Shown here piece after piece: positions 27-31,587 of a stretch of DNA of 64,000 nt. Below the pieces are notes generated by a model that had not been told where the DNA came from, did no database searches, and saw only the letters and a program-made list of their open reading frames with translations. Both the position numbers and the translations under genes were made by a program. The stretch is from NCBI GenBank assembly GCA_973895155.1, contig OZ316899.1, positions 2,749,455-2,813,454 on the forward strand. The letters are read 5' to 3'. Within the stretch, counting starts at the first letter, position 1, and every line of letters begins with the position of its first letter. This DNA comes from Marsupella aquatica (lineage: Eukaryota > Plantae > Marchantiophyta).

Positions 27-48
27 CTTGTCCAATCGCCCCAAGGAC

Positions 49-66: not shown

Positions 67-67
67 A

Positions 68-2030
68 TGTCGCAAGGACAAGAAGTTAGGGGCTCCTTGG
101 GTAAACTACGTGTTTTTGGCTGCGATTGGGACAGGCGACAAGCACTTTTTGGAGCAAACTCTCACTCCTTTATTTATTTTTACTTTTCTCTCAATGGTTA
201 CAATGGGTGCCCTTGAGTAAGCTTGCTTGCAAGAGTCTGGTAGCTGACCCTACGGCGGGCCGCTACCTCTAACTTGTCAAGCTAAACTCCTCAAGTGGCT
301 ATCTACTCAAAATCTGACGGAAAAACTCTCCTCCTTAGCTCACAAAACCAAAACTTGACTAGCTACTCGACTAGTCCTAACAGCTCACAAGAAACTCGAG
401 CCTGGATCAACGAGACTCCAAGCTCGAGAACCTACACCGGATCCAACACTTGCACAAAACACCAAAATTGTTGCACAAAAGTTGAATTCCACAGAACGCA
501 GCGGAACTCACAGGACGGAACACAACAAAACTCAATAGACAACCGCCAATCGCAATGAGCCAAAGCCCAAGGCTTAAATAGCATCCAAAACCAACCTTCC
601 AGTCTGAGTTAGCTGACATCAGCGAGGCTCATCCAAACTCCAAGCCTGGTGACTCACCCAAACACCAAACCTGGTGACAACGAGTCACCCAAACATCAAA
701 CCTCAATCCATCCAATCAAGCAACCTGTCCAAGTCAGCATGCACGCAACCGAACAGGGACGCCTCGCCCATCAGTTCCTATAAAAACCATGCATCGTGCT
801 CTATGTTGTAGGCAAATAAAAGTGAAAGCGAGGCAAATAAGAAAAGGGTGAGGCAAGGAAAAAGAAACGGCCCCTAATGGGCTCGAGCCTAGGGCTTTGC
901 GCCCCCCTCTCCTTATGAGCTCCCAAAGAGGTGGGGGCTATGAGCTCCCCCCCTCTTAAATGCTCTTTGGGCCTCATGCTTGGCTCGAATGTACTCCCTT
1001 CTGTTTAATGCAGCATAGGGCCTCGTGCCCTCTACTAGCACTCGCTTCCCCCTCCTCTCCTTGGCTTGTGCTCAGCTCCCCCTTGCTTTTAATGCTTCAT
1101 AGGGCCTTGTGCCCTCTCCCTCTTGTGCAAAAATCTACTCCCAAGAGAAGGGAGTCTGTACTCCCCCCCTCTCTTAATGCTGGCAACAAAAGGTCAAGGC
1201 TAGAATGAGGCAAGGAGGAGGCGAAAGAAAAATGGGACCCCCCCTATATGAGTAAGGAGGACTGGAGGAGCGAAGGGAGGGTGCGTGGCCCTATGCGCGG
1301 CTTTGGGGCATTGATGAGCCCCGCATGTGTATACTCAAGCTGCAAGTAGGGCAACAGCAGGACTAGGAGGCAGCTCGCGATGGCAGCTGCCAAGTAGAGA
1401 AAAGGGGTCGCGGCCAGGAAACAGCTCGCGACCGAAGCCGCCTGAACAAAATGGAAAAAAGGGGAGAAATTGGCCGAAAACACCAAAAATGGCCTTGCAT
1501 ATGTCGATCAGCAGCAAGTCGCCTCCACTTCGCGGCAATCGATTGGCAGTCAAAAGTAGGTTTTGCTGCGGCCGGCAATTGACGGAGGCAACACTCAACG
1601 GAAGGGATCACGGACGCACCTAGGAAGGAAAAGTTGGGTTCCAATAGAAACGTTATGTGTATACTTACACATAACGCGACATTAAACCCATAATTTCAAC
1701 CCGTCCCTCCATTGTTGCTCAAAGAAATTGCACCGACTTCGACGGGAAAATGTCAACTGTCTCGAGCAATTGAGAAGCACAACGTCTCTGATCTTGTTCC
1801 CCTCACCACAGTTCTTCTTGAATAAAAGGCGTAAGAGAAATAAATGTACTGAAATTGAATAAAAAACTGGCGGGATGCCAAGATCGGCCAGGAGCATCTG
1901 ACGAATCACTATGTGAATCCCGTGTACGGAATCGACGAGCATTTTTTGAGTTCTATCAACAATGATTCAAGAAGAACTGAAAACCAACAAAGAAAGACAT
2001 GCCCTAAGTAAGCTAAGTCTCAGCGTCACA
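68..2030 (-). mobile_element. Element A 5' LTR (Ty3/gypsy, same family as B)
   Basis: 68-790 is the reverse complement of the B LTRs and ends GCGACA next to the PBS. The distal boundary at 2030 (TGTGACGC on the minus strand) rests on the TG terminus only. Confidence 0.6.
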
Positions 2031-2685: not shown

Positions 2686-4233
2686 TTTGTGTTCGAGGTT
2701 TGGTGGCCTGGGCAGTGGTGAGAGTGTTTATTGTGTTGAATCAGGGTGAAATATTGAGTTGTTGTTGATGATTGCGGAATCATTTCACCGGTTGCTCTAC
2801 ATTGGAGTTTTTGTGTTTGAAAGAGGTGACGGTTTTCCGACTGAAACTTCAGTTGAAGTATCGGATGTGTTTCCCTGTGTTTTCTGAAGGTACTTTTGAG
2901 TGGACAGTCCAGAAATTTTTCATGCGCAACATCGAGCATTGCGTCTTGGTGAAACTTTTTTTGTGTTTCATCAAGCTATTGCAAAATTTTGTCGATTTTA
3001 GTTTTGCTATTTAGAGGTTAAACTTCTTGGTTATGGTGATTTGGTTGTGGTACCACTATTCTTTGCAAAAATGTCGTGGTCCTACCACCAAAAGTTACCA
3101 TTTCATTTCTCCTCATTTTTTGTGAGTAGTTGCCATTTTGCAATTATTTGTGGAGGTGTGTAAGGTCAAATACTGAGTATGTGAGTACGCCTGTGTATGT
3201 AACACGGTATGGTACTAAGGACGAGTCAAACATAAAGTACAAGGATAGAAGAGGAGATTGTACCTGGTACCATGCACTTATTGAGGGGGCTGGTAAGTTT
3301 GTACCTTACCTGGCTTGGAGCATTCATTGGGCTTGTACACTGTACCAGGCCTGTGCAATATAGGAGGGAGAGAAAGGAGAGTCTCTTCTCCCTTGTGACT
3401 GTAAGTACAAAGCTTGGTTGTACTAGCACATTCAAGAGGAAGTTGAAGGGGCTGTACCTGGTATCAGTCCAAGTACAACATTAATGAGGCAGATTGTTTT
3501 TTATGTGCAAAGAAGGTGGTGTGGGGTCTATTTGTGACCCAAGGTACAAAGTAGAAGGGAGGGGAGAGTAGGAGATCCCAGCCCTTGTGATACTTTTTGG
3601 CTCATGCATTGGGGCTCTTGGCCATAAGCACATTAAATTAGGAAGGTGACAGATGGCGCAATGGAGAACATAAGCTTGAAGGGCAAAGGGAGGATAAGGG
3701 GCAACACTTGCCCTCTTTGGTTGTTTTTTGTTAAAACATTTGTTTCTTTTGCGCATGTGGGTTTTCCCTTGTGGCTGGACAGGTGTCACTTTCTGGTGCC
3801 TTCTGCTGTAAACCTTGACTGTACTTTGATTCCCCTGGAAAATTTCTTTTCTAGACAGCTGAATTTTGGCCAAAATTTCTGAATTCGATTGTCGTCGAGT
3901 CAGAATGTTTTTGCAAGATCTTGCAAGGGGATACTCAAGGGGGTTGAGCACAGGCTAGTGAAATCAATTTGTGCGTTGCTATTGCAAAAAAACAGGGGAC
4001 CTAAGATACCCGACTGGGGTCAAAACGGCCATTTTGACCCCCCTTTCGGTCCAAGATGAATAAGTTTTTGCTGAAGAAGTTTTTTGCCAAATCGTTTTCA
4101 AATCTTGGTAGTGTACCTTGCAGGCTACGTGGCGGTGCATTCCATTTCCACTTTTGCCAAGTTTCATTTTTTGGTACATTTTTGGGTGGAGGTATTTCGG
4201 TTGTGTATTTCCTGTGTGTTTGTGGCAACATCA

Positions 4234-4430
4234 ATGACTTCAAGAAAGCTTGCGGTGCCAAAGTTTGAGGTGGAGAATTTTGACGGGAAGGTCAGCTTCA
4301 GCCTCTGGACTTGGCCCTCAAATATAATAGATGAGGAGTGGGAAGACATGTTGGTGTAGGCGTGTAGCACAATTGAGTTATTCTTGGCCGGGATTATTGG
4401 CAAACAACATTCTCACTACAACAATGACCT
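4234..4430 (+). pseudogene. gag: Degenerate copia gag N-terminus
   Basis: MTSRKLAVPKFEVENFDGKVSFSLW...DEEWEDM resembles the Tnt1/Tork-type KFEVEKFDG..FSLW start; internal deletion and stop follow. Confidence 0.65.
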
Positions 4431-5026
4431 CAACCTTTTGTTTGAGAGCAAGTACTTGGCCCCTCCCTATGATATCATGGCTATGTCCAAAGAAATTAAA
4501 AAGTGAAAATTTTGTCTCATTATTGGGTTAATGGAGTATAATAAACCCAGAAATGGCTACAAAGTCTAGTTTACAGTACAAAATCCGGACATATCCGGAT
4601 AGCACTCTTTTTGGAACTTTAAAATACAGGTACAATTGCACCACAAGAGAAGGCGTATGAGAATGAAGATAAAACCATAAGTTGAGCATCCGGCCAAAGA
4701 CTGAGACTTGGTTTTCGAGTTCTTAAGGCGATTGTTTGGGCTGCAATCCACACACCGAGACGCTACAAAAATCTTTAGTCTAAAAGATTGGAGAGAATAG
4801 AGCCGGACAAGGCTACCAATTCAAGGCATTAGTCGTGAGGAACTGGTTATGGGGGAAATGGGTGATTGTTTGATTGAGTGGGGAAGTGGCAACTTGATTC
4901 CAATTTTCGGATTTGAGATTTCCAGATTTTTGTGAAGGGATTTTAATTCAGTTTCTTTCTCTCCATCGCCTCATCATGGTGAAGAGAAAGGGTCCGGATT
5001 TTGCCCCAGAAAAATCCGAAATCTGG

Positions 5027-6330
5027 ATGATGCCTAAGCGTACGACCAAGGAGCGGACTGTCATGGTTAATGAGAAACCGTTGCGACCCAAGATCGCGTC
5101 GGATCCAAAAAGGAAGGCCCGACTTTAGAACAATTTAGAGGCGATGGGTTGTGCAAAGCTACTCGAGTTACCATGGATTACCAGAGTGCGGTGTTCGTGA
5201 AGGAGGTCCGGAATCGTGCGACCCTTACTTTGGAATTTCCAGATTCTATTAGAGGAAATCCGGAAAAGTGGACAGCGGTCATCGTTTCATCATTGTTGGA
5301 TGTGCCATTGAAAGGAGAGAGCTTTCTAACTTCAAAGGAGAATTTTTTCGACAACTATTTTGATGGCGAAGTAGATCCAAAGGATGGCCAGAAGGTATCT
5401 CAGTGTTGTAATGAGGAGTTCTTTGATGTCCTGTCCTTCCTGTTACCAATTCTATCCCCTGCCAAACCTCGCCGAGTTACAATCCAGATTGGGAATACCA
5501 TTGCTGCTTCCTACATTGGTGAGAAGAAGATTTCTTGGGCAAAGGTGTTGGAGGAGGTCATTGCTAAGGAAGTCCGGAATCTTCATTTGAAGACCCCCAC
5601 CTCCCTTTCGTGCTACCTGGCTAACCTGTACTCCATGGACCGGGTGCCGATAGACAAAGTAGAGGAGTATGAGAACCAAGCCATGTTAGCTCAACTTGGA
5701 GATCCAGACCGGCAGCAATCACAGGGGACAAAATCAAAAGAAGATCCGGTTGTTGAAGTACAACCTCCCAGGACCCGAAAGAGGTTAGTTCAAAGTCCAG
5801 AACCGGATCCAGTCGAAGATCCGGAACCTGTCCGGAGACCGGAAAGCAGAGGAAGTCTTCCGGGTGTGATCCCAAGTTCCAAGTGGACGGTATCAGCAGA
5901 GTTGGAACATGTCCGGACATTCGTGGAGAGTGCAACCGGAAAGGCTAAGCAACTCAAGGATCTTGTAGGGAAAGTTGCTGAGATGCTCAACTGCAGTCCG
6001 ATTGTCATCATTTCCACTTTGGATATGGTGATTAAAAGTCAGGCCAAGAAGAGGATCTGGGCCTTAGAAGACCAGACAGACAAGGACAGAAGGAAGATTG
6101 ACTCCTTGGTAGACCAGTTGGATGTTGCACAAAAGAAGTTGGAGGACCATCTTCAGATCCGGAAGCTTCTGAATGGAGCAGTCATCAGTGTTCAGGAAGC
6201 GCTTCATGTACCGGCCTTGGGCTTGTTGGAAGCCAACCTGATTGATAAGTACTTAGCGACTGCCAATCCAGGCACTATTGCTAAGGTTATTGAGTGCAAG
6301 AACCGGTTTGTGTGGAATGCCTCGATATAG
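5027..6330 (+). pseudogene. Retrotransposon accessory ORF (short form of the LTR-ORF domain family), with C-terminal coiled coil
   Basis: One stop (5126-28) and one frameshift (about 5175) join MPKRTTKE...LEAMGCAKLLELPW to the 393-aa ORF. Motifs LxLPW, RGNPEKWT..LLDVP..G, DG....QCCN, SFLLPILSPAKPR and WAKV recur in the ORFs of D, G, H, I and at 26390. Confidence 0.65.
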
Positions 6331-7483
6331 GTTTATGTAAGAAACTTGGCATTTTATTGCTTTTTGAACAAGGAATAGTAAGAAAGTTGTTTTAAGTGCT
6401 ATCGGAGTAACTAGGTTTTAGGAACTTAAGTAGGTAGAATAGGAAAGATAGTGGAATGGAAGGTTACTGAGTTGTAAGCAAGTGACAAGGGATAAGAAAG
6501 GTCTTTATGGTGGGGCATACAATGTTCTGTCCTTAGTTAGAATAGGCAACTGTTCCAAGCCGGAGAAACAACCCGACACTTGAAGTCTTAGTTTTGGATA
6601 AATATTTTCCCTATAGGTGCTAGGAGGTCCTTAGAGCACCCCTATGAAGTATGACTTCAAGTGGGGTCTCAACCTAGGGTTTCCTTGTGTTTTGGTGGGA
6701 CTTAAATTAACAAAATAGCGGGTCTCGGGAAAAATAGCTGATGGGAAACGGTAGGGGTTCCAAGTTGTAAAGTAGGTTAAATATGGTCCACTATATCCCT
6801 GGAAACTTGTGGGAGAACTTTGTTACCTTTGGTTACTTTTTGGGAGCATCTCAAAGTTGAGAGGAATTTTGGAAAACATAAGAATTAACCCTCTTTACCT
6901 AATTTTAGAAAATAGTTTATAAGGGTTTGTCTAGATATTAGTAAACCAGGACATAGTCCTATGTCTAAAGAATCTGTAGATTTACTCAAAAGTCATTTTG
7001 GACTCATGTGTGAGGTTTTGGGGCGGTCCAAAACAGCCTGAAAATACTGTTTTTCCAACAAAAACATCCAAAAACTTTTCTAAGTGTCAACCGTGTCGGC
7101 GGCGACCATGACTTAAGCACGAGGCCGGGGAGACTCAAGCACAAGGTCAGGAACACCATAAGGGTCAATACATGAGATGTTTGCTTCGAATTGGGATCAA
7201 GAGGCAGCTACAAAATTGAATTGAGCTGCTATAGCTTCAGGCATGGGATGCTAATCAAAATTGGCTGGCTGCCTCGATGCTGCTGATTGGAATAGAGTTG
7301 CTTGCTATGGAGAAATAGGCTGCTGCTGATCAAGAGATGGCTTGCTGACTGTGAGCTATGGTGGGCTACGAAATTGAAGGGTTGGCACCTGATCAGACTG
7401 ACTGCTGCACCAGAATTAGAAGGGCTAGTTTCAAGCACGAGATGTTGAGTGTTGGCTGATTAGTAAGTATGCTGAAAGCTCAA

Positions 7484-8150: not shown

Positions 8151-8354
8151 CCTATTTCAGAGAAGTAAGTATAGGGGTAGTTTACTTAGGGTAGTAAAAG
8201 GGTTACAAGTAAAATAAGGTCAACTTTGACTAGGCATAACTTGAGACTCACTCACTCTTTTTGCAAGCTTTCAAGTGGGTTGGAAATCTGGTGAGGAGGA
8301 ACATAAGTGGGAGCACGTTTGGAGGTCAAAGGATGCAACTCATGTGTGGCATAT

Positions 8355-9835
8355 AGTCGCGGAACTCGACTACCTTAACACTTAGCTCCGGCGTCGCTGA
8401 CTCCGATGCCGAGCTCCCTTATGGTCCAGGCCCGGATAGGCCATCCGGGGAGGACTTAACATGGGGAGACTTGTGGGCAATGAGACGTAGCACTAGCGAG
8501 GCAAGGGGCCAAGCTGGGGATACACACTAAGGACTTGGACTAGCCTATGGCTGGTCGGGTCAAGGGGAAATGGGCTGGGCTCAAGGATGGCCATCCGGAC
8601 CTTAGGATGGACTTTGAGTTCTGAGGGCTTGGGAGTGAGTTCCTCTTGGGCCCAAGGCCAATGGAGTTGACGCCATTGGCAACGGACGCTTGGGGCGCAA
8701 GTTGTGGCCCGATCCGGGTTGGGCCGGTCGGGGGCCCCGAGCGGCGATCAGACCTGAGGGCCTAGGCATGAGCACTGGGTCGGCCCAGTCACGATAGGCT
8801 AAGGCACTCCGCTTGCGGATGCCTATCAAGAAAGTTATGGGCGTTGTCAGTTGGTGGCGCGCCCATTATGCGCGATGGGATCCGGGTTGGGGGCCAAATG
8901 TTTAGGGACCAAAGCTGGTCCGGGGGTGGCACGTCTCCAGAAACATATATGAGGGGAGTGGTGTCTCCCGGGGGCTAAGGCCAAGCCGAAATCGTGAGCC
9001 GCGGCGGTCGCGATACTATCGGAAACCGCCAAATGGAAATGGCAATATCTCCCAACGGGAAGTCCATTGGAGGACTTCTTGGGTGCGTTGGAAATCTCTT
9101 GAGGAAGGCTACGTCCTCTTGAGCTCAGCTAGATCTGGGGGTGCCGTGGGTTCTTGTGGTTTGTGGGTGTTAGCTCGCCCCCTTGCCAAATCCTGTCGAA
9201 CAGCAGCCAAGCCGCGTTCTGTCTCCCAAGGGAGCTTGCATTGGGGAGGCAATGCCAAGTAGGTGCGGAGGCTGAGTTCCAAGGGTGCTCGGCCCCTAGA
9301 CCACCAGTGGGGCAAACCGGGAGCGGTTGCTAGGGTCGGGACTGTTCTGGTCCCGGCGTCTTGGGACAAGCTTTAGGACAAGCTACGCTATTTGGGCCAT
9401 GAGCATGTCCTGAGGTCAGGGCGGTCAGTTGGTGATGGATAAGTACGAGGGGGAACCCGGGCCGCGCGCAAGGAAGAAGCTATTCTGGACAAACAGTGGG
9501 CGTGGGTTCTAGTTCTGGCTTATGGCATCGGGAGGACCTATCGCTGACCTATTTACCAACGTCTGTTGAGCTTGAGTTAGGATGCTAGACTTGGCGAGTT
9601 CTAGATCTTGAAGGGTTACTTACCGAGGTGCTTGGTTGCTTGTGCAGATAGGGAGGACCGTTGAGTAGCGGTCGTGTTAGAGAGCAAGTGCGGCTTTGTA
9701 TGGGCGGGGCCGCTGGCGGTGCAAAGGGGCACTAGGTTTGCTTGCTTAGGTATTCCGTGGAGGCGTTTGGGCACCAAGGGCACTTAGGCGTGAGTGCTGG
9801 GATTAGTGAGGGGCTGGGTGGCGAAGTCCACCACT
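8355..9835 (+). mobile_element. J1: solo LTR of family J with AGT...ACT termini
   Basis: Full-length match to both J LTRs. Flanked by perfect 5-bp TSD CATAT (8350-8354, 9836-9840). Confidence 0.9.
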
Positions 9836-10117
9836 CATATTCCAGGGCTTGGAAAGAGGCAAAATAGCAAGTAGTAGGGTGGGTTATGAACTATAGAGTT
9901 GGACTTTGTGTGTTAGGAGGACTTGGGGGAGGTATAGTTGGACCCCAGGTTGAGCTTGGTGTAGTGTGGAAGGAGAATAGTATTAATAGAGGATTTTTCC
10001 TTTGATGCCTAGCCAGGAATCATTAGGCTAGTTTAAATAGTAAAATCAGGAGTGTACCCTAGGAAACACCTTAGTATAGTAACAAAAACAGGGAAATATA
10101 AACAATTAAGGGTGACT

Positions 10118-18093: not shown

Positions 18094-18935
18094 TGTGACG
18101 CCGCCAGCACGGCGGTTAATAAGTGATCCGGCCTAATCCGTGCTTAGCACGCGCTCTATGGACATAGTAGTCCGTAATAATTAGCATAACGACACTAAAG
18201 TAGGTAGTAATCACGACTATGATATCATTAGTCAATAAGGAGCATTTACGCTCAGGCTGGCGGCGGAGCGCCATTCGTACCCCCGGGTTTCAGGCATGTA
18301 GGGATGTCCCCTTGGGTCCGTATAAAGACTCAAAGGGGCAGCTTGCTGACACGCTCTGACCCGGACCTGCGGAGTGGCCGGTACACTGCAAGCGTGAAAG
18401 GATCGGCCTATCAGAAGGAGGAAGGGGCCGTTTGGCCGACGAGCTCTCAGGGTATAAAAGGCGGGCCATTCTCTTGCAAAGCACCAGCACTTCACCCATC
18501 GCACCAGCTCCGATCCCAGCTCACTCATCTGTTCTTTAGTCATCCACCGCCTTTCCCCTATATGTCTGTCACTATTCTATCCAATTTTGCCCTTCGGTTT
18601 TGGCTTCAATTTCTATCCATCAGAAATCATTTAGCAAAGTAACTGGCCGAGGTCAATCCGCGCCAGTACAAAACCAAAAGGTAGTACAAACAACTCATCC
18701 GTCTGGCCGGGCGCTCTCACTATAACGGAGATTTCAACCTCCCGTTCCATAGCAAGCTCAGTCGTCCCGACGAGATCTCCAAATACTTCTTTGACGGCCT
18801 AAAGTACGTCAGTTTCTAGGAGGCACTCCTTTGGCTTCCGGATAAGGTCTTCACACTCCCGGGCACGATCAACTTACAATGACACCACTTTGAAGTCCAG
18901 GCTCACATCCCCGCCAAAGTCCAGGCCTCCATAGA
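18094..18935 (+). mobile_element. Giant LTR I, left part (TGTGAC start, TATA box, 5' end of accessory ORF)
   Basis: Homology to H 37726 and below begins exactly at TGTGAC. TATAAAA at 18453-59; ORF from ATG 18562 (MSVTILSNFALRFWLQFLSI). Confidence 0.82.
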
Positions 18936-20415
18936 AGTGGTGGACCTCGCCACCCAGCGCCCTCACCAATCCCAACACTCACGCCTGAGTGCCCTTGGTG
19001 CCCAAACGCCTCCACGGAATACCTCGAGCAAGCACCCGAGTGCCTCTTGCACCACCAGCGGCCCCTCCCATACAAAGCCGCACTTGCTCTCCTACACGAC
19101 CGCTACTGAACAGTCCTCACTGTCTGCACAAGCAACCAAGCACCTCGGTAAGTAACCCTTTAGGATCTAGAACTCGCCAAGTCTAGCATCCTAACTCAAG
19201 CTCAACAGACATTGGTAAATAGGTCAGCGATAGGTCCTCCTGATGCCATAAGTTGGAACCTGAACCCACGCCCACTGTTTGTCCAGAACAACTCCTTCCT
19301 TGGGCACGGCCCGGGTTCCCCCCCGTACCTATCCATCACCAACTGACCGTCCTGACCCTAGGATGTGCTCATGGCCCAAGTAGCGTAGCTTGTCCTAAAG
19401 CTTGTCCCAACACGCCGAGATCATAATGGCCCTGACTTTAGCAACCACTCCCGGTTCACCCCACTGATGGTCTAGGGGCTAGACACTCTTGGGACTCAAA
19501 CTCCACACCTACTTGGCCTTGTCTCCCCAATGCAAGCTCCCTTGGGAGACTGAACGCGGCTTGGCTGCTGTTCGGCAGGATTTGGCAAGCGGGCAATTTA
19601 ACACCCGCAAACCCTGCAAACCCACTGCTCCCCAAGACTTAGCTGAGCTTAGGAAGGCGTAGCCCTGCTCAAGAGATTTACAACGCACCCAAGAAGTCCT
19701 CCAACGGACTTCCCGTTGGGAAGATATCACCATTTCCGTTTGGCGGTTTCCCTTAGTGTCGCGACCGTCGCGGCTCACGACTTCGGCTCGCCTTTAGCCC
19801 CACAGAGACACCACTCCCCTAATATATGCTTCTAGAGACCTGCCACCCTTGGGCCAGCTTTGGTCCTTAAATATTTGGCCCCCAACCCGGATCCTATCCA
19901 TAATGGATGCGCCACCAACTGGCAACGCCCATAACTTTCTTGTTAGGCATCCGCAAGCGGAGTGCCTTAGCCCGTTGTGATTGGGCCGACCCAGTGCTCA
20001 TGCCTAGGCTCTCAGGTCTCATTGCTGCTCGGGGCCCCCAATCGGCCGAACCCGGATCAGGCCACAACTTGCGCCCTAAGCGTCCGTTGCCCATGGCGTC
20101 AACTCCATTGGCCTTGGGCCCAAGAGGAGCTCACCCTCAAGCCCTCAGAACTCAAAGTCCATTCGGAGGTCCGGACGGTTGGCCTTTAGCCCGGCCCATT
20201 TCCCCTTGACCCGACTAGCTCTCAGCTAGCCCAAGTCCTTAGTGTGTGTCACCATCTTGGCTCCTTGCCTTCGCTAGTGGCACGTCTCTTTGCTCACAAC
20301 TCTCCCCATGCTAAGTCCTCCCCGGATGGCCTATCCAGGCCTGGACCATAAGGGAGCTCGGCGTCGGAGTCAGCAACGCCGGAGCTAAGTGTTAAGGTAG
20401 TCGAGTTCCGCGACT
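18936..20415 (-). repeat. J 3' LTR
   Basis: Direct repeat of 30177-31582 and homologous to J1. Confidence 0.92.
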
Positions 20416-20428
20416 TGCACCCCCCCCT
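20416..20428 (-). promoter_or_regulatory. J polypurine tract (AGGGGGGGG-TG-CA|AGT)
   Basis: Run of 8 C on the plus strand at 20420-27, adjacent to the LTR start. Confidence 0.8.
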
Positions 20429-21469
20429 AAAAATGGTCACGTCCGCGTGGCCTCAGTAAACGTTCCAACACGCCTAGACCACTTTGGGCCTTAAAAATTT
20501 TATGAGGTAACAAATGGTTTGCACATAAGGTTGCTGCAAACCAGGTTGGTATGCGCATTGCAGACTTAGGAAATTCCAACCTATCCAACTTATCCAAGTA
20601 GGATGCCAGTCCAAACGGTGTCGTGCCGAAAGATTTTGGCTCAAGAATGGCTTTTATTGGGGATGATGGGCAAGGCCTCCAGGTTGGGTTGCGTGCATGC
20701 TGACTCGGAGGGGCTGCTTGGTTGGTTGGATTGAGGTTTGGTGATTGGGTGACTCGTCGTCACCAGGTTTGGTGTTTGGGTGAGTCACCAGGCTTGGAGT
20801 TTGGATGAGCCTCGCTGCTGGCAGCTGGCTCAGGCTGGATGGTTGGGTTTCCGATGCTACTTAAGACTTGAGCCTCGGCTCATTGAGGTTGGCGGTTATC
20901 TATTGAGATCTATTGAGTTGCATTCTGTGAGTTCCGCTCCGTTCTGCGGAACTCGACTGTTGCGCGGCGGTTTTGGAGTTCTAAGTGAGTTTTCAATCCA
21001 GGTGGGGAGTTTTCAATCCAGGCGGGGATTTCTCGAGTTTGGAGTCTTGTCGATCCAGGCAAGGATTTCTTGAGTTTGGAGCCTCGTTGGTCCAGGCCCG
21101 AGTTCCGTGCGAGCTGTTTTAGACTAGTGGAGTAGCTAGTCGAGTTTTTGGTTTTGTGAGCTAAGGAGGATAGTTGTTCCGTCAGATTTTGAGTAGTTAG
21201 TCACTCGAGGAGTTCTACTTGACAAGTTAGAGGTAGTGGCCCGCCGTAGGGCCAGCTACCAGACTCTTGCGGGCAAGCTTACTCGAGGGCACCCATTGTA
21301 ACCTTTGTGAGAAAAGTAAAAAATATAAAGGAGTGAGAGTTCGCTCTAAAAAATGCTTGTCACCTATCCCGATTGCAGCCAGAAACGCGTAGTTTGCCCA
21401 AGGAGCCCCTAACTTAAGTCCTCGCGACATTTGCAACCATACTGGGGATTCCTTGGGCGATTGGATGAG

Positions 21470-22782
21470 ATGGGTGACTATGACGAAGTTGACCGGATAT
21501 CGAGCATCGTCATGTCGATGATGAGAACCATAAGGAAGGAAGAGCTTGAGTCGGAAAGGGCGAACAGGGAAGCAAATAGAAGTACTCAGTGTCTCCAAGA
21601 GGTTTTGAAGGAGAATGGGCAGTTCGATGGGAGAAATGTGACAAGCTACCTTAAGTCTTACTTGATAGAAGCAGCTATCTACAAGTTGGACGAAGGGACC
21701 GCCGTGAAAGAGTTCATGGTGCTGGTTGAGAAGGAGTTGAGTTCGATGGTGCGGACCATCGTTGAGTCAGTTGAGGGCTGGGATGACTTTGACCAAAAGA
21801 TGAAAGAGGAGTTCCAAGCGGAGGATGCTGATCGGGTCACGCAGGCTACCTTCTTGGATTGGGTGAATGACAAGAACAAGAAGCTGAAGGGGCCGCAAGA
21901 GCTCCTAAGGGAGTTCAAGAGAAGGGTGTCTCAGTTACCAAAGCGGGATGTGGGAATCATCGAGTTGCAGCGCTCGACGCTCTTCTTGAGGGCAGCCGAT
22001 GAGGACCTTCGAGAGGAGCTTGAGAACGCGATGGAGCTGCTGGAAGCTTTGAGAGTTACCTTGTCTAACGACTGGAACCAAGTTGAGAAAGCGGTGTCAA
22101 AAGTGAGCAATCGACACCGGCGGCGAGAGCTAGACAAGGAGGCTACCACTCTTGACCTAAGGCCGTCGGAACCGATATTGAGGAAAGGGAAGCGAGAACC
22201 AGCGAAGGATGAGATCAAGCCATCGGTGGATGATCTCGCGGAAATGATGCAGAACCTGAAGATCTTGGCAGCACATGCAATCGAGAATCCAAAACCGAGG
22301 GTTGCGAGTGCTCCCGAGAGGAAGCAAGAGATGCAGAGTTGGCCATGCATGTGGTGCGACAGCAAAGAGCATGACAAACGGGAGTGCTTGGACCTGAGGG
22401 GGAAGCTGCGGATAAAGGGCTGATCAAGTTTGTCGGTGAAGTTGGTCAGAAAAAGATATCGTTTGCCGACACTAAGGAGCCGATTCCATTCAACTCCAAC
22501 AAGGGAGGCATGAAGGCTTTGGCTGAGAAGCGAGCTGGGAAGCGAGTCGAAGAGGCATCCTCTTTGCACCTGGAAGCGAATGTTTACAATGTGGAATTGG
22601 ATGGCCCCGTGACGGAAACGGACAAGTTTTATAAGCGCTTGGCGGATCTGGTGCGAGAGAGATCCGGATGGAGTGACCCGGTGCTGATCAATGTGATAAC
22701 GGTTGAGGTTGGGGCTAGTTGGGATGCCTCGGTTGAGTCAAAAAGGAAGAAAACCGATGAGGATGACACTCTGTCTCAATGA
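21470..22782 (+). pseudogene. gag: B gag (one frameshift near 22390)
   Basis: QFDGRNVTSYLKSY capsid motif and CMWCDSKEHDKREC knuckle; homologous to E gag. Confidence 0.85.
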
Positions 22783-22845
22783 GGGGAACGAGAGAGGCGG
22801 GATACTCGAGACAAGGAAAGGAGGGTTAGGTTCAAAGAAGAGGAA

Positions 22846-24339
22846 ATGAGCGAGAAAGAGCTAGAAAAAGGGAAACCGATCAGGAAGGACCCAGGCTGGG
22901 TGCTTGGCACGGACGTGGACCAGGCCATGTACCCGGAGGTTGTAGCTAAGAAGTTCTGGAGCCAACAGGCTCAAGGGTTTACCAACGCCAAGTTCTTTGG
23001 CAGTATGAGGTGGGAGATCCAGGAAGCGATCTTGGAGAGATCCAAGAGGAAACGGATTTACAAAGAGGGCCCTCACACCTTGATGGGGGAGGCTGGCGAG
23101 ACGGAAATTGGGAGTTTCCAAACTTACACTACTAGGGCGTCCATGGGTTCCGGTAGTAAGCTTGCCGGCCCCAAAGAGTCAGACTTGGGGGAACCGAAGA
23201 GGGTCAAGTCCCTTGAAGAGGAGCTCATGAACTTGGACGATGAGTTCTTCGATGCGGAAGAGGAGCTCATGGGAGCCGGAAGCAAAGCTGAGTCTGTGGC
23301 AAACAGGGACCCAACCAAAGGGGGAGAACGGGAAAGCATTACCGCGCATTCGAGAACCATTCATGTCATGGGCTCAATGAAAGGAAACGGTTATGCTTAC
23401 CAAGATGGATACTGGGCTCGAGCAAGTCTGGAGAGCGAGTGCCAGTTGGAAAGAATGGAAGGCAAGGTGCGGGCGCTCATTGATATTGGCTCGGAGATCA
23501 ACTTGATGGATCCAAAGGTGTTTCAAAAGGGGAATTGGCTGGTGGACAATGAATTGCTTTGGAGTGTGAACTTGGTGAGTTCAATGAAGGACTATCTTTG
23601 GGGCGGATGTCCGAATATGATGGTGAAGTTCGGGAATGTCAAGCAGGCTTGTAACATTTTTGTTCATGAGCACTTGTCGTTTCCGGTGATACTGGGCATG
23701 CCGTTCATCACTGAATGGAGGATGGAGACAAAGGTTCTGGATGATACTACCTTCATGGTGAAGGCTAGGGGCAAAGATGATAAGGAGGTGGTTCAGTTTC
23801 CGGTGGTTCTACCTGGAAATGAGAGGAACCGAAAGCAGCTGCGAGATCCAACAGCGGCAGAAGTTGGCATTGCTATGGGGGAGAACCAAGATGCTAAGAT
23901 GGATCTAAGTGCAAAGTTCAAAGGGGAGCCAATTGCGGACCGAAAGATGGGGAGTCTAGTGTTCAAGGAAGAGTGTTACTCAGGAGAGCTACTGGACATT
24001 GGGAAGTATCTGAGTGACTTTGGGAAGCGGCTGAAGCAGGATGGTAAAGAGTTCGAAGACATTCGAGTGAATTTTGATAAGTTCATTCTTAGAGAGGGCT
24101 ACCTTTGGCGGAAACCTAAGGGCCCCATGCTAGTACCAAGGAGAGTTGTCAATTCTAAGGATGAGCAAAAGCGGATTTTGGAGGAAGTCTATGATGTTGA
24201 GGTCAAAGGTGGTTTGAAAGGAATAAGGGCGAAGGTCTGTGAGCGGATCCGAAAGGAGTATAATTGGTGGCCAGATTTGTATTGGGATGTTCAGGAGTAT
24301 GCTAACAATCGAGGGATCCATCACAACTTGAAGAGGTAG
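22846..24339 (+). pseudogene. pol: B protease fused to a degenerate integrase zinc-finger region; RT, RH and IN core absent
   Basis: ALIDIGSEINLM protease site, then REGYLWRKPK..PRRVV..KRILEEVY..GG...WWPDLYWDVQEY; no RT motifs. Confidence 0.75.
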
Positions 24340-25081
24340 ATTCAAGAGCTTGATCGGATTGACTATCGAGTCGTTGACATACGGGAGAGAGTGAAGGTTT
24401 GCAAGGTGCGAACTAGAGATGAAATGGACTCAAGTTCCGACTTGAGTGAATTTTAAGACGAGGCACTGGTCCAGGCGCATCCATTCGACTTGAGTTTCGA
24501 AAGTGGCTTGACTGGTTCTGATTCGGACGAGTTGGACTTTGAGTTTTTGGAAAGTGGAGTGCCTAAGGCCAAGTCTGAAGGCTTTGGGTTTGAGTTTCTT
24601 GAGGAGGAAGTGGTCCAGGCGCATGGCTCGAGTTTGGACTCAGACTTAGAGGAAATCTGATGGATTGGAGCAGACCGGAGGCTGCTCAGGTTTACTGGGG
24701 GAGGATATCGTGCCAAAAGATTTCGGCTCAGGAATGGCTTTTATTGGGGATGATGGGCGAGGCCTCCCGGTTGGGTTGCGTGCATGCTGACTCAGAGGGG
24801 CTGCTTGGTTGGTTGGATTGAGGTTTGGTGATTGGGTGACTCGTCGTCATCAGGTTTGGTGTTTGGGTGAGTCACCAGGCTTGGAGTTTGGATGAGCCTC
24901 GGTGCTGGCAGCTGGCTCAGGCTGGATGGTTGGGTTTCCGATGCTACTTAAGACTTGAGCCTTGGCTCATTGAGGTTGGCGGTTATCTATTGAGATTTGT
25001 TGAGTTGCATTCTGTGAGTTTCGCTCCGTTCTGCGGAACTTGACTGTTGCGCGGCGGTTTTGGAGTTCTGAGTGAGTTTTT

Positions 25082-25200
25082 GATCCAGACGGGGAATTTC
25101 TCGAGTTTGGAGTCTCGTTGATCCAGGCGGGGATTTCTCGAGTTTGGAGTCTTGTCGATCCAGGCGAGGATTTCTCGAGTTTGGAGCCTTGTTGGTCCAG
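25082..25200 (+). repeat. 37-bp tandem repeat in B 3' LTR
   Basis: Three copies of GATCCAGGCGGGGATTTCTCGAGTTTGGAGTCTTGTC; two in the 5' LTR (about 21016-21095); one in A. Confidence 0.85.
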
Positions 25201-26389
25201 GCCCGAGTTCCGTGCGAGCTGTTTTAGACTAGTGGAGTAGCTAGTCAAGTTTTTGGTTTTGTGAGCTAAGGAGGATAGTTTTTCCGTCAGATTTTGAGTA
25301 GTTAGTCACTCGAGGAATTCTACCTGACAAGTTAGAGGTAGCGGCCCACCGTAGGGCCAGCTACCAAATTCTTGCGGGCAAGCTTACTCGAGGGCACCTA
25401 TTGTAACCTTTGTGAGAAAAGTAAAAAATATAGAGTGAGAGTTTGCTCCGAAAAGTGCTTGTCACCTGTCCCGATCGCAGCCAGAAATGCGTAGTTTGCC
25501 CAAGGAGCCCCTAACTTTAAGTCCTCGCGACAACGTGTAAGCTAACTCCAAACTCGTCGGACCCATTGTTCTCCCCTTGGGGTACTCCCCTTTAGTTTGA
25601 ACCAGCCCGCCCACAGATGTAAGGCGGGCACTATCTACTTCCACTTGCGAAAAACAAATAGGGCGCCCAACAACCTGTAGCACCAACACAATCCAACTTT
25701 ATCCTTAAGAGGCCGAGAGGAGTGAAACTAGGATACAACTTACAAAGGTAGCTACAGTTGCCTGTACCAGTTCACAACGGCGGCAGGCCGCTTCGCTTAC
25801 GATAGCTTTGAAGGATCTCTAAGGCATTACTCAAATTTTCTTCTGGTTCCCAAGTACTCTCGGCCTAATCATAGCCAGCCCACTTCACCAAATACTCTAA
25901 GATTTGCCTTCCCAACTTGCGTTTGTAACGGTGGTGTAATAGTTGTCTAAATTAGAAACTTAGAAATAATGAATTTTTTTTTAAAATTTGTAGTTAGAAA
26001 TAGATTAAACATAGCCAATTAATCTACTTTTAGATATAAGTAAGGTTAAGACTTAAGTTAGGCAAATTAGTGGATAATACCTTGAGTAATTAAGTAGGGG
26101 TGAGACGAGCCGAAAGAAACTACTATCGATGTTTTCAAAGCACGGAAGGAAGATTGGTGCTGCCAAGTTTGACCGTGCGTTACAAAGAGCGTTTTGGCGT
26201 AAAAGTGCAACGGCGCTTTGGAGTAAAAGCGCAATGGTGTTTCCGGGGAAAAGCGCAACAGCGCAACCGCGCAACAGCATTTTGGAGCAAAGGCGTAAGG
26301 GCGCAACAGAGCAAAAGAGCAATGGCGGATCACTTGGCATTAATCTCTTCGGATCGATAGTTGGTGACAACGCCTTGTTCCTTGTTACT

Positions 26390-26893
26390 ATGGCAGACGA
26401 AGGGGGAGAGATGACTGCGAGAAGAGTTCCCTTACCTAAGGCCGTCCCTGTGACATACCCTACAATGGAAAGAAACTTGCACATTTTGAAGGAAGCACTG
26501 GTGGTCATGCACCTGAGTAAATTGCTCACTCTGCCTTGGTCCATAACTTCATTAAGTTTTTTGAAGGATTTCAGTGATGGGGCACAAATCGAAGTTGGTA
26601 TGGTGGGAACTGCTAGGGTGAATCCAGAATTCTGGACTCTGCAATTTGTTGCTAATGCTTTCGACTGTCCCGCCGAAGGTGACAGCCTTCACTCACGACA
26701 AGGAGCTAGCAAGGTGAACACTATGTTTCACAGGAGACTACTCCCCATTCTAAATGTTGAACGACAAATCAGGTCTCTTCCATTTGCTCGACATGATACG
26801 CAGGTTATGGATTTCCTTCGAGAGGTGATTCAAACTGAGACATTCAGGAGTTTTCAACAACCGGACCAGTCAGCACTACTTCAAGAGGATTGA
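26390..26893 (+). pseudogene. Truncated accessory ORF of the same domain family, antisense within J's 3' region
   Basis: LVVMHLSKLLTLPW and TARVNPEFWTLQFVANAFDCPAEGDSL align with 5027-6330 (AMGCAKLLELPW; SIRGNPEKWTAVIVSSLLDVPLKGESF). Confidence 0.55.
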
Positions 26894-27849
26894 CCTATTC
26901 CATCCTTCGAGTCAGGATTAGTCAATCTCCACCATTTTTGTTAAATAGTTATCATAGTTAGAAAAGTCTCATACTTTTTCAGGAGGTGGCTCTTATCTAG
27001 CAGACCATACCCTGAAAGTATCAACTTAAACCGACATGTAGCATTTTGAGTTTTTCTTAAGCGTAATTGCGCAAAGGCGCAAAAGCGCAACGACACTTCC
27101 GACACTTAGAAATTTTTTTGGAACAGTGTATTTTCTATCCGACAACACTTTTCACCGATTTTATTATGGCACTTAGACACCTCAGAAAAGTCTAAAATTT
27201 TGCCAACATGTAGCATGTATGTAAATCTTCCGCCTAGAAAAGTTTCACCCTATTATGACCTTTATGTTAGAAATTAAAATTCTGATAAACTCACAATTTA
27301 TTAGTTTTACCACAAAAGTGCAAAAAACACTTTCACTCTGGTTTATACTAAGGATCATTTTTGATTAGTTTTTCATTCCAGGAACATTCTAGTGAACCTT
27401 GAGTAATCTTGTAACACATTTCCATACTTTTTACTTTAGTTTATGACCCTTAAGACATGAAAGGGCATGTCTTTTCATTATCTCTTTTCCCTTTAGTTCC
27501 TGCTAGCCTATATGTAGTAGACTTTATGTCATTTTTTGTGAGAAGAAATTTCATGAGCGCTCAGTTGCAAGATTGCAACTTTGTTACCTCCATTTGTAGC
27601 AAGCACTCCATTGCATATGAGTACTTAATACAAAGGAATTCTTCCCCCTTCAAGTCTAAATGAATGAGAAGTTTGGACCCTTGAAGTAAAATTATTGTGA
27701 TTGTTAAATATTTTGAGTATGTGGAAATAGATTCCTTGTTGGTGATGTTTCATATATTCCTTAGTTCTTGATGCATAGTTTTTGACGTGACATTGCTTGT
27801 GCACGGGATGCAAAGATTGTTACTTACCAATTACTTATGGCTTCAAATT

Positions 27850-28340
27850 TGATCATGATGGTGTCTCTTATTTGTGACAAAAAGTACCGATTGGATAGAG
27901 TCCTATGGAGCCGCAACTACCAGTAAGGGTTGCAGAAGTTCTCTTTTTGCCCTATAGACCGTTTGGTTCTTTTGGCACGAGTAACAACTTTGCACGTGGC
28001 GAAGGACCAATTGCTTCATGTCCGGCCAATACACATCTTGCGACATGCTGCGATACGTAGCGGCTTGTCCTCCATGCCCTCCCCAGGGCAAGTCATGGTA
28101 CTTTTGCAGAACCTCTAACCTTAGAGACTTTGGTATGTACACACGCCTCTGCTTGTATCGCGATAGTTGAACATTATGCGTCGTATCCAACCCCAATGTC
28201 ACGTGCCTTACCTTGCACACTAACGATTGTAGCAACTCTTGCACGTCCACCCCAAGACATGCTACCGCCTGCCCACTTATGAATTAGGCGGTCGCGCCTG
28301 TATCCACCAAAGAAACACCCAGATTACCGTTAGAAATGAC
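27850..28340 (-). pseudogene. pol: J pol remnant: protease site joined to integrase HHCC region
   Basis: LVDTGATA at about 28289-28310, then YIPKSLRLEVLQKYHDLPWGGHGG...YWPDM...CYSCQKNQ...LLQPL. Confidence 0.8.
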
Positions 28341-30031
28341 TTCACAAAAATCAGTTTTTCAGGATCCATTGTCTTAATCTTAGGTATCTTCTCTCGCAAC
28401 AACACCTTATCTCCAGTAGGAACATCCCTTACAGGGACCTTGTCAGCTACTAAGGGTTTGGTTAGAGCAATACTTATCTTAATGCTCTTCTGCCCTCCAT
28501 CTCCGCTTGGCTTGCCACCTTTCGTGGAACAATCCTTCCTTTGATGGCCCATGGCACCACACATGAAGCACAAACTTTCCACCCGCCTCTGCTCCATGAG
28601 TGTCTGCTTGTTTGCTTTCTACGCCGATGAGGTTCCTTTCTTGAAGTTGCCGACCTTCCGGTTTTGCTTAGCTTCTCCATTCTGGGGCCGGGGGTCCAAA
28701 CCACCGGCCCCCGCCCCCTCAGGCTGCTTACGCTTATTCCCGAGACCTTTTGCTTTCCCAACTTCCCCCTTGGAGCCCTTGCCACCCACCTTCGCCAAGT
28801 CCGGTCGGTTATTCACCAATGTAGTGGCCTTGTCGAAGGCGTCAGAAAGCGTTTTGAACTCGTGACACTTTTCCTGTAACTTTTCCCTGAGCAGCGGCGG
28901 GAGCTTCACGATAAAGTTGTGAAGCTGTGTATGTAGGGTCTCTTGTCCCGCTGGGATACACGCCAACTGGTTCTGGTAATAAGTGATGAACTTTTGGATA
29001 TCACCCCTGAAGCTCATCTCCGTTACACATTTATGAGCGTGCCGCTCTAGGTACTTAGTGGTGACATGAGCACGGAGTCCCTCAACCAGGTTTTCCCAAG
29101 TTAATGGCAAGGAGGAGTCCTCTCGCAACTTCTTCCATGACTTATACCAAGTCAAGGCATAGTCCTTCAGGTAAGGAGCGGCTGCGGTAGCCCAAGTGGA
29201 ACGCTCAACACACGCTTGGAGATTAATCTCCATTGTGGAGAGCCAACTCAGGAACTTTTGTCCACTTTGTTCGTAGGCCCCATCATAAGTTGGAGGAGTC
29301 GGTAGCTGGTTCACTTGGAACATACTCTGTCCAACTACCATTCCCCCCTCGGGATGCGTCGCACTCTGACTACCCAGAATAAGTAAGTACTTAATCTGGG
29401 CCCCCTTGTTGTGTTCCAACTGCTCATAAATGAGTCGTTGGTCTTGAGTCAACGGACCCAAACCGTCGTCAAGGGCTGGGCCCTTGTGGGTTGTATGAGG
29501 ACGGTCCTCCAACCGTCTTTCCTTTGCGGGCCGCTTGTCCTTAGGTTCTCTCATGGATTTTGGTGACACCCCCCGCGTCTTGCGAGCACCATGACCTCTC
29601 GAGACTGAGGCATCACCTGCATTGCCCTGGTTCTGCTTGGTCAAATTATCCACGATGACGTCCGGATCGACATCATCCTCTGGTTTCGCATCCAACCCTC
29701 TCAAGGCTAAGATCAGTTCCTCCTCTGGGTCCTGACCCTCTTCCTCTGATTCAGCTTTAGCATTCTCGTCGCTTCCATCCACGTCAGAGCCGTCATCATC
29801 CGACCTGTCCTCCAAAGGATCAGCCACCTCCTTCCCTTTAAGTCAACGGGGCTCTGCAATTGACGTGTTTGCCGCGGCGGTCGACGGTTCGGCCACCAAG
29901 TCTTCTTCGTCCTGCTTGTAACGTTTGTCTAGGGAAGTCAACCCGTCCTCCTTCTGTTCCTCTTGAACTTGGGCTCTCCCCTTGGTGGGGGGAGCTTGTT
30001 TGCCACTCTTTGATTGAGTGTTTTTAGCCAT
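28277..30031 (-). pseudogene. gag: J gag, two in-frame stops
   Basis: ATG 30031 (MAKNTQ); capsid-like FLSWLSTME..YLKDYALTWY..LTWENL; knuckle CFMCGAMGHQRKDC. Stops at 29843 and 28619 are in frame. Confidence 0.85.
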
Positions 30032-30162
30032 GTTCCTAGTGACCGAATCTGCCCGCAGTCGACCCGCCGAGCACGTAGAAGCACTAAGTCCCCGCAAAAA
30101 TCCGTTAAGATTTTTGGATTCCAACTTAGCACAACCCCGGCCCGGTGTCTATGCCAGCAATA

Positions 30163-30174
30163 GCTCTGATACCA
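30163..30174 (-). promoter_or_regulatory. J PBS TGGTATCAGAGC (iMet)
   Basis: Exact match, 2 nt (TG) from the LTR end ACT. Confidence 0.9.
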
Positions 30175-30176
30175 CA

Positions 30177-31582
30177 AGTGGTGGACCTTGCCACCCAGCG
30201 CCCTCACCAATCCTAGCACTCACGCCTAAGTGCCCCTGGTGCCCGAACGCCTCCATGGAATACCTCGTGTAAGCACCCGAGTGCCTCTTGCACCACCAGC
30301 GGCCCCTCCCATACAAAGCCGCACTTGCTCTCCTACACAACCGCTACTCAACGGTCCTCACTGTCTGCACAAGCAACCAAGCACCTCGATAAGTAACCCT
30401 TTAGGATCTAGAACTCACCAAGTCTAGCATCCTAACTCAAGCTCAATAGATGTTGGTAAATAGGTCAGCGATAGGTCCTCCCAATGCCATAAGCCAGAAC
30501 CAGAACCCACACCCATTGTTCGTCCAGAACAACTCCTGCCTTGGGCACGGCCCGGGTTCCCCCTCGTACCTATCCATCACCAACTGACCGCCCTGACCCC
30601 AAGACATGCTCATGGCCCAAGTAGCGTAGTTTGTCCTAAAGCTTGTCCCAAGCTTGTCCCAACACACCGGGACCAGAGTGGCCCCGACTTTAGCAACCAC
30701 TCCCGGTTCACCCCACTAATGGTCTAGGGGCCGAACACTCTTGGGACTCAACCTCCACACCTACTTGGCCTTGCCTCCCCAATGCAAGCTCCCTTGGGAG
30801 ACTGTACGTGGCTTGGTTGCTGTTTGGCAGGATTTGGCAAGCGGGCGAGTTAACACCCACAAACCCCAAGAACCCACTGCGCCCCCAGACCCAGCTGAGC
30901 TCACTCAAGAGCTTTCCAATGCACCCAAGAAGTCCTCCAACGGACTTCCCGTTGGGAAGATATTATCGTTTCCATTTGGCGGTTTCCCTTAGTGTTGCGA
31001 CCGCCTGGTTTCCCCGGACCAGCTTTGGTCCTTAAACATTTGGCCCCCAACCCGGATCCTATCGCGCATAATGGGCGCGCCACCAATTGGCAACGCCCAT
31101 AACTTTCTCGTTAGGCATCTGCAAGTAGAGTGCCTTAGCCCGTTGTGATCGGGCCAACCTAGTGCTCATGCCTAGGCTCTCAGGTATCATCATCGCTCGG
31201 GCCCCCGATCGGCCCAACCCGGATCGGGCCACAACTTGCGCCCCAAGCGTCCGTTGCCCATGGCGTCAACTCCATGGGCCTTGGGCCCAAGAGGAGCTCA
31301 CCCTCAAGCCCTCAGAACTCAAAGTCCATCCGGAGGTCCGGACGGTCGGCCTTTAGCCCGGCCCATTTCCCCTTGACCCGACCAACTCTCAGCTAGCCCA
31401 AGTCCTTAGTGTGTGTCACCAGCTTGGCTCCTTGCCTTTGCTAGTGGCACGTCTCTTTGCTCACAAGTCTCCCCATGCTAAGTCCTCCCCGGATGGCCTA
31501 TCCGGGCCTAGACCATAAGGGAGCTTGGCGTCGGAGTCAGCAACGCCGGAGCTAAGTGTTAAGGTAGTCGAGTTCCGCGACT
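30177..31582 (-). repeat. J 5' LTR
   Basis: Direct repeat of 18936-20415 with a deletion of about 75 bp. Confidence 0.92.
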
Positions 31583-31587
31583 ATAGA

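Follow-up and report, generated by a model that had tools for sequence, protein, structure and literature searches.

Long terminal repeats with AGT...ACT ends in a liverwort-type chromovirus family, and a candidate residue in its integrase

Element J and its boundaries

The window analysed here, a stretch of 64,000 nt from contig OZ316899.1 of the liverwort Marsupella aquatica, contains element J, a long terminal repeat (LTR) retrotransposon whose LTRs begin with AGT and end with ACT instead of TG and CA. The features that define it are listed below in window positions; slashes within sequences mark boundaries.

18936-31582, minus strand: element J, delimited by its LTR boundaries and target-site duplication (TSD)
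30177-31582, minus strand: 5′ LTR of J, 1406 nt, AGTCGCGG...CCACCACT, from the LTR alignment
18936-20415, minus strand: 3′ LTR of J, 1480 nt, from the LTR alignment, with family-wide boundaries from contig loose ends
18931-18935, no strand: left copy of the TSD, ATAGA in plus-strand reading, from the sequence
31583-31587, no strand: right copy of the TSD, ATAGA in plus-strand reading, from the sequence
30163-30176, minus strand: 2-nt spacer TG (30176..30175), then the primer-binding site (PBS) TGGTATCAGAGC (30174..30163, 12 nt), at the 5′ LTR junction ...CCACCACT/TG/TGGTATCAGAGC
20416-20434, minus strand: plus-strand priming region, consisting of a T-run, A, a G8 polypurine run (20428..20420) and TGCA (20419..20416) adjoining the 3′ LTR, with homologous junctions in the relatives L002, L004 and L034 described below

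Read on the minus strand, the layout is TCTAT/AGTCGCGG...CCACCACT/TG/PBS ... G-run-TGCA/AGTCGCGG...CCACCACT/TCTAT. Both LTRs open with AGTCGCGGAACTCGAC and close with GGTCCACCACT, the likeness between them starts precisely at AGT and stops precisely at ACT, and the TSD is perfect (5/5), reading TCTAT on either side in this orientation. A preliminary description of the locus had given these coordinates, the AGT...ACT termini and a perfect ATAGA duplication, and all of them proved exact when both LTRs and their flanks were read again. We take the PBS TGGTATCAGAGC to be complementary to the 3′ end of the plant initiator tRNA-Met (tRNA-iMet). At the opposite side of the internal region the polypurine AGGGGGGGG lies 4 nt ahead of the 3′ LTR, the junction being TTTTTAGGGGGGGG-TGCA/AGTCGCGG; paired LTRs, TSD, PBS and polypurine tract (PPT), the structural marks of an LTR retrotransposon, are all present in J. 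Pairwise alignment of the two LTRs gives 92% identity, with 88 transitions and 20 transversions, which indicates that this copy is old.

The AGT/ACT register across copies and genomes

A second member of the family lies elsewhere in the window, in the orientation opposite to J, and represents an independent insertion with the same register:

8355-9835, plus strand: solo LTR of family J, 88% identical to the J LTRs, flanked by the TSD CATAT (8350-8354 and 9836-9840) and reading CATAT/AGTCGCGG...CCACCACT/CATAT

Beyond the window, a gag search returned relatives at 43-67% identity, and those with an organism name all came from the leafy liverwort Calypogeia fissa. At the C. fissa loci L001-L003 and L034 the LTRs are 1589-1664 nt long, open with AGTCGCGGACATG and close with GGTCCACCACT. 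Their 5′ junction is the same as in J, ...CCACCACT/TG/TGGTATCAGAGC (L001:8945-8966, L003, L034), and their PPT junction reads GGGGGG(G)TGTA/AGTCG. TSDs in the AGT/ACT register are perfect in two cases (GTTCT/GTTCT and CCACT/CCACT, 5/5) and match at 4/5 positions in two others (GGTGT/GGTGC and TGCAC/TACAC). With the two insertions of the window this makes six independent insertions in two genomes, four with perfect and two with 4/5 5-bp TSDs, all in the same register. The preliminary description had proposed examining the flanks of further copies for such duplications, and the insertions read here agree with its expectation, as do the contig breaks reported below. A metagenome contig, L004, is a more distant relative, its protease (PR)-reverse transcriptase (RT) region being just 50% identical to that of C. 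fissa; its 3′ LTR starts at GAAGAGGGAGCTGCA/AGTCGCGGATAAG, and the LTR opens with AGTCGCGG.

The abundance of the family was assessed on contigs of four public runs (two organisms, two studies) that match positions 18436-20915 with a likeness of at least 85%. Exactly before 18936, 28-77 contigs per run diverge into unrelated sequence in all four runs, and exactly after 20415 the same happens to 63-104 contigs per run in the three of four runs for which this break is listed, with an agreement of the flank consensus at the break points of 0.33-0.40. Summed word depth in these runs rises about 50-100-fold at 18934 and drops about 10-fold after 20427. RNA-derived runs were absent from the public runs found. 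Together, contig breaks and word depth indicate that the J family is abundant, with LTRs outnumbering internal parts, and confirm the boundaries at 18936 and 20415. The consensus of the insertion flanks in these runs is rich in A and T (window 18900-18935 and the loose ends), and the TSDs vary; there are hints in these sequences that the family may prefer AT-rich target DNA.

Non-canonical ends of this kind could be a boundary artefact, the true TG...CA ends lying elsewhere, or could reflect post-insertion mutations of J alone, and what speaks for this is a general prior, as 99% of the extra rice LTR candidates found without a motif were false positives (10.1101/137141). Such an explanation has to contend with the same-register TSDs of six insertions, with contigs of other copies that break exactly at 18936 and 20415, and with identical ends in another genus and in L004. 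An alternative register with TG...CA was also sought near both J boundaries and none was found, neither boundary having TG or CA within reach. No TG...CA copy occurs among the J-family LTRs examined, and every complete one in the window and in C. fissa carries AGT...ACT. We consider the artefact to have a very small probability, and the AGT...ACT termini of element J and of its family are confirmed as real.

The AGT...ACT clade is thus represented in two liverwort genomes or more. J and the commonest C. fissa LTR form have their first 9 nt (AGTCGCGGA) and last 11 nt (GGTCCACCACT) in common, and in the rest of the LTR BLAST finds a single alike block of 60 nt between the window family and C. 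fissa. Termini that are kept while the LTR interior can no longer be aligned form the pattern expected of a constraint on integrase attachment sites. The flanks are less uniform: the dinucleotide preceding AGT at the PPT side is CA in J and L004 and TA in both C. fissa subfamilies. The symmetric arrangement noted in the preliminary description, PPT-CA/AGT and ACT/TG-PBS, therefore holds for J, with CA also in L004, and fails as a constant of the clade.

The 60-nt block (window 19807-19866 and 8906-8965; L002:13412-13471) shows 86-88% identity when the window family is compared with C. fissa and may be a promoter or R-region element. At L034:5918-15985 the order is LTR, internal region, LTR, short internal piece and LTR end fragment, and a single TSD (CCACT) around the whole array points to one recombinant or tandem element more than to two separate insertions. 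Two scans of metagenome DNA, one for the LTR-PBS junction and one for a hairpin upstream of the PPT, gave zero matches.

Coding content and decay of the window copy

Between its LTRs the window copy of J retains only part of a coding complement and has been invaded by another element:

28619-29827, minus strand: gag open reading frame (ORF), 402 aa, with a Ty3_capsid match (E 2e-6, 27.7 bits, slightly below the Pfam cut-off of 29.1 bits)
28277-28597, minus strand: nucleocapsid ORF with a CCHC zinc knuckle (zf-CCHC match)
27903-28250, minus strand: integrase N-terminal H2C2 zinc-finger piece (Integrase_H2C2, E 5.7e-20; 81% DNA identity to L002:14355-14622)
25934-27902, minus strand: AT-rich 2-kb stretch, without domain match, in place of the integrase core and SH3 domain
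25700-25933, minus strand: chromodomain-region remnant, visible by DNA similarity only (69% to L002:15553-15786; no Pfam match left)
20619-25532, plus strand: nested LTR element with TG...CA ends, unrelated to and outside the J family, with an empty site in other J copies (contig loose end at 20618)
20434-20453, minus strand: conserved stem-loop of 8 predicted pairs with loop CGGA, just upstream of the T-run and PPT, with compensatory changes at 3 pairs among J, L002 and L004

Protease, reverse transcriptase and RNase H are gone between the CCHC knuckle and the H2C2 piece, and for the stretch at 25934-27902 no domain match, no likeness to relatives and no second copy in the window was found. 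J is an internally deleted derivative of its family that carries a nested TG...CA element. An autonomous copy, whose recovery the preliminary description had recommended, was sought in the window and is absent from it (J lacks PR, RT, RNase H and the integrase core); pol domains were recovered in L002, L004 and L034.

The nested element is about 4.9 kb long, with LTRs of about 810-825 nt that are 92.5% alike and ends TGTCGTGCC...CGCGACA. Its TSD is imperfect (ACGG/ACGT), its ORFs of 330 and 497 aa have no Pfam match, and an LTR related to it lies at window 4-790 on the minus strand. Counterparts of the stem-loop occur at L002:16119-16138 and L004:4741-4760; it may act in cis from within the 3′ untranslated region, for instance in plus-strand priming or packaging.

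Chromovirus affiliation and a canonical relative

The affiliation of the family follows from its better-preserved members. Domain matches in L002 comprise CCHC, protease, RVT_1, RNase H, Integrase_H2C2, rve and SH3_Tf2-1, together with a Chromo match split by one stop codon (16 and 24.6 bits). L004 has the same set minus a recorded rve match, and its chromodomain is intact and aligns to those of CDY and HP1, while L034 has RVT_1 and RNase H matches plus the integrase active-site loop. The PR-RT-RNase H-integrase (IN) order of Ty3/gypsy (Metaviridae) pol is present in L002, L004 and L034, and J keeps gag, CCHC and IN-H2C2. The D,D-35-E core of a retroviral-type (DDE) integrase is recognisable in L004 and L002 from the Asp motifs MDFI and IVDRF and from a Glu within GQ[TV]ER. 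The domain content of these three loci identifies the J family as a chromovirus (gag-CCHC-PR-RT-RNase H-IN-chromodomain).

Its likeness to plant chromoviruses (Tekay, Reina, Galadriel, CRM, Tcn1 and bryophyte clades) extends to the domain order with a C-terminal chromodomain, the tRNA-iMet PBS, the 5-bp TSD and LTRs of 1.4-1.7 kb, the length in the J family. It differs from them in ending AGT...ACT rather than TG...CA and in an integrase loop that reads HH[E/D] or HSH rather than HP[Q/E].

A canonical counterpart is L005 (protein P0025), which is 43% identical in PR-RT and has a chromodomain. Its termini read GTAGC/TGTAAGATCCC...TCTCA/GC/TGGTATCAGAGC, with the far end ...TTTCA/GTAGC, which amounts to TG...CA ends, a 5-bp TSD, the PBS of J and a 2-nt spacer (GC). 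As this geometry is the same as in the AGT clade, only the terminal base pair differs, flipped at both ends (TG...CA to AG...CT). L005 (1164-10085) has 2.7-kb LTRs and an internal region (3888-7355) that holds pol alone; gag is absent between the LTRs, and small ORFs lie within them. At L006:1011-3122 another chromovirus-like element has an upstream ORF that joins the protease with dUTPase and DCD domain matches. Two proteins, P0010 and P0017, are 52-66% identical to the protease and RT of the liverwort element; the contigs that encode them, about 1.4 kb long, bear the labels Acinetobacter nosocomialis and Candidatus Saccharimonadales metagenome-assembled genome, and the proteins are probably plant contamination of bacterial assemblies.

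The integrase active-site loop

The clade integrase aligns to the Ty3 integrase (intasome 7Q5B) with E 4e-20 over the catalytic Glu and the SH3-like domain. The Ty3 loop reads N-H-P-Q-T-D-G-Q-S-E-R, and that of prototype foamy virus (PFV) reads Y212-H-P214-Q215-S-S-G218-K-V-E221. In the PFV intasome Pro214-Gly218 reach in between the two strands, where they stack on the CA adenine (PMC6784120). The corresponding loops of the AGT clade are:

L002: A-Y-H-H-E-T-N-G-Q-T-E-R (AYHHETNGQTER)
L034: ...H-H-E-T-D-G-K-T-E-R (AYHHETDGKTER)
L004: ...H-H-D-T-D-G-Q-V-E-R (AYHHDTDGQVER)
P0033 and P0066: HHE
P0041: HSH

Searching exhaustively with the integrase piece of L004 gave 150 cluster representatives, and an alignment of 148 integrases was examined. 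Proline occupies the loop position in 136 of these 148. It is missing from all five aligned integrases of the AGT clade (His in four, Ser in one) and from a sixth, L034, which was read separately. The remaining exceptions, 7 of the 143 integrases outside the clade (P0101, P0107, P0114, P0145, P0165, P0171 and P0180), are scattered singletons with Ala, Gln or His. The residue after the proline position is Gln or Glu in 143/148 and Glu, Asp or His in the AGT clade; H-P is retained by the other integrases of the window, which belong to elements near 38 kb and 63 kb. The five clade integrases come out as one group in a quick maximum-likelihood tree (Shimodaira-Hasegawa-like approximate likelihood-ratio test, SH-aLRT, 99; branch length 0.74).

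Since the PFV loop stacks on the terminal adenine, the loop change of the clade is rightly placed to matter, and the preliminary description's suggestion that residues contacting the DNA end deserved inspection has yielded a concrete position, at which six AGT-clade integrases lack the proline. An integrase-profile scan of IMG/VR had turned up real LTRs in L030 alone, which end TG...CA, most contigs being circular-assembly artefacts with terminal overlaps of 100-156 nt; its patterns demanded HP[Q/E], so that it was blind to integrases lacking the proline. An altered integrase specificity, with the loop residue as candidate, is plausible from these comparisons and unproven.

Comparison with known LTR termini

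The near-universality of TG...CA in plants and the association of AGT-type ends with insect errantiviruses, both asserted in the preliminary description, agree with the literature. About 99% of rice LTR elements are TG...CA, and plant non-TGCA elements make up about 1% overall (10.1101/137141; PMC9804982). The latter are mostly short-LTR Copia elements with ends from a published set of motifs (TGCT, TACA, TACT, TGGA, TATA, TGTA and TCCA), in which only the first T is invariable (10.1101/137141); lotus adds TGGT and TGTT (PMC9804982), and Rosaceae add TGTT and AACA (PMC5659011). In this four-letter notation J is AGCT, a type missing from the motif lists of all three sources (10.1101/137141, PMC9804982, PMC5659011). 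For plants, liverworts included, a search of the literature found no report of AGT or AG...CT termini, which is weak evidence given that most subscription journals and Repbase lay outside the search.

The J family is a variant of a known phenomenon, that of non-canonical LTR termini. With plant non-TGCA elements, including Tos17 and TARE1, it shares family-stable non-canonical ends compatible with transposition. Those elements are mostly Copia, with LTRs of about 270-330 bp; they often lie close to genes and as a rule have one changed end. J, by contrast, belongs to a Ty3/gypsy chromovirus family with long LTRs and high copy number, in which the LTR starts with A and both ends are changed without loss of the inverted repeat.

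Ends of the J type are otherwise familiar from Drosophila errantiviruses, which have AGT...AnT ends with the three terminal nucleotides fully complementary in 5 of 11 errantiviruses (PMC5408687), and of which the Zam clade ends AGTTA...TAACT or TAATT (PMC3601003). The AGT...ACT of J fits the AGT...AnT pattern of the gypsy, ZAM and Idefix subgroups, and it is conceivable on this ground that the J family goes back to an errantivirus-like element that crossed over from insects by horizontal transfer, with AGT ends by descent. Errantiviruses, though, are insect elements with env, without a chromodomain and with sequence-specific palindromic targets, whereas the plant chromovirus J has varied 5-bp TSDs (ATAGA, CATAT, GTTCT, CCACT, GGTGT, TGCAC). 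Its integrase ends in a chromodomain and groups with chromodomain-bearing relatives in the tree, the tRNA-iMet PBS is set off from the LTR by 2 nt, just as it is in L005, a chromovirus with TG/CA ends, and in L004 the roughly 430 nt from the end of the chromodomain to the 3′ LTR leave no room for env. Chromodomain, lack of env room and varied 5-bp TSDs together mean that J is not an errantivirus; transfer from insects is highly improbable, and the terminal resemblance is best read as convergence.

Proposed mechanism and its alternatives

It is probable that J, with its internal deletions, is an old member of an abundant liverwort-type chromovirus family in which the terminal base pair is flipped at both LTR ends (AG...CT for TG...CA), with co-evolution of the integrase as a hypothesis. 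In the standard model of reverse transcription, the tRNA bound at the PBS primes minus-strand synthesis from its 3′ end, so that the U5 end of the linear cDNA would include the spacer and read ...CCACCACT-TG. As the integrated copy ends ...ACT and the cDNA would end ...ACT-TG, the integrase would remove 2 nt and join a ...CT-3′OH end, not ...CA-3′OH, to staggered target cuts 5 bp apart. Trimming of 2 nt at U5 is well founded within this standard model. Retroviral and Ty3 end processing (PFV and HIV intasomes; Ty3 7Q5B) offers a close parallel, as a 2-nt U5-PBS spacer implies 2-nt 3′ processing there as in J, with the differences that the processed end would be CT-3′OH in the J family and that the equivalents of PFV Pro214 and Gln215 are replaced. 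Co-evolution with these ends would have placed His or Ser for Pro, and Glu, Asp or His for Gln, in the loop wedged against the terminal adenine.

The widest form of this proposal is that a liverwort chromovirus clade re-specified the integrase-DNA end contact, from CA-3′ to CT-3′ at both ends, alongside replacement of the loop Pro-Gln and in convergence with insect errantiviruses; we put it forward tentatively, as a possibility well short of even odds. Several points count against the proposal as a whole or narrow it. J itself lacks PR, RT, RNase H and the integrase core, and all inferences about the enzyme are consequently drawn from relatives. Three of the integrases, P0033, P0041 and P0066, are assigned to the AGT clade by their integrase sequence. 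The sister of the five-integrase group, a group including the L005 integrase, has weak support (83-84). The loop and the ends each changed a single time, on what looks like one and the same branch, which makes these changes a single event in which coincidence is possible. At U3, trimming hinges on the RNase H cut site after the G-run, and with TA as the PPT-side dinucleotide in C. fissa the clade does not conserve the symmetric cDNA ends CAAGT...ACTTG; in the J family the end at U3 may be made blunt, as in foamy viruses, in which this end can need no processing (PMC6784120). Of the cDNA CAAGT...ACTTG trimmed by 2 nt that the preliminary description envisaged, the U5 half stands on the reverse-transcription model and the U3 half is conjectural.

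A competing account holds that specificity is relaxed rather than altered: any terminal base pair would be tolerated, the ends would have drifted to AG...CT and become fixed, and the loop Pro-to-His change would be unrelated or permissive. In plants, non-TGCA families that deviate at one or two terminal bases have indeed originated repeatedly and in many cases group with TGCA relatives (PMC9804982), the loop proline is likewise missing from seven scattered integrases that do not belong to the clade, and the tie between loop and ends is that single evolutionary event. Drift fits poorly with terminal 9-12 nt that are the same between genera where the LTR interior has diverged past BLAST, a sign of strong constraint on the exact ends; both ends, moreover, changed in a complementary manner that retained the inverted repeat, and a TG...CA copy is absent from the J-family LTRs examined. 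We regard relaxed specificity as unlikely, and less so than either a boundary artefact or insect ancestry.

Significance

Detection that depends on TG...CA would miss this family, as the preliminary description anticipated: REXdb elements were predicted with 5′TG/3′CA required (PMC6317226), and LTR_retriever searches seven alternative motifs, all T-first (10.1101/137141). With plant LTR pipelines and REXdb built on TG/CA or a few T-first motifs, an abundant AG...CT family would be dropped or mis-bounded, and its omission would skew the figures for repeat content, LTR age and solo LTRs obtained from bryophyte genomes. If the end contact has indeed been re-specified, TG/CA-based references of plant transposable elements would systematically miss an abundant bryophyte lineage.

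The occurrence of AGT...ACT in both insect errantiviruses and a plant chromovirus clade suggests that there are few workable alternatives to TG...CA. The CA-3′ end is held to be essential for retroviral-type integration, and a clade with CT-3′ ends, a TG/CA relative and a loop change in its integrase provides a testable handle on end recognition. Were the contact re-specified, the liverwort chromoviruses would offer a natural, matched att site/integrase pair in which to study the reading of the invariant CA by retroviral-type integrases.

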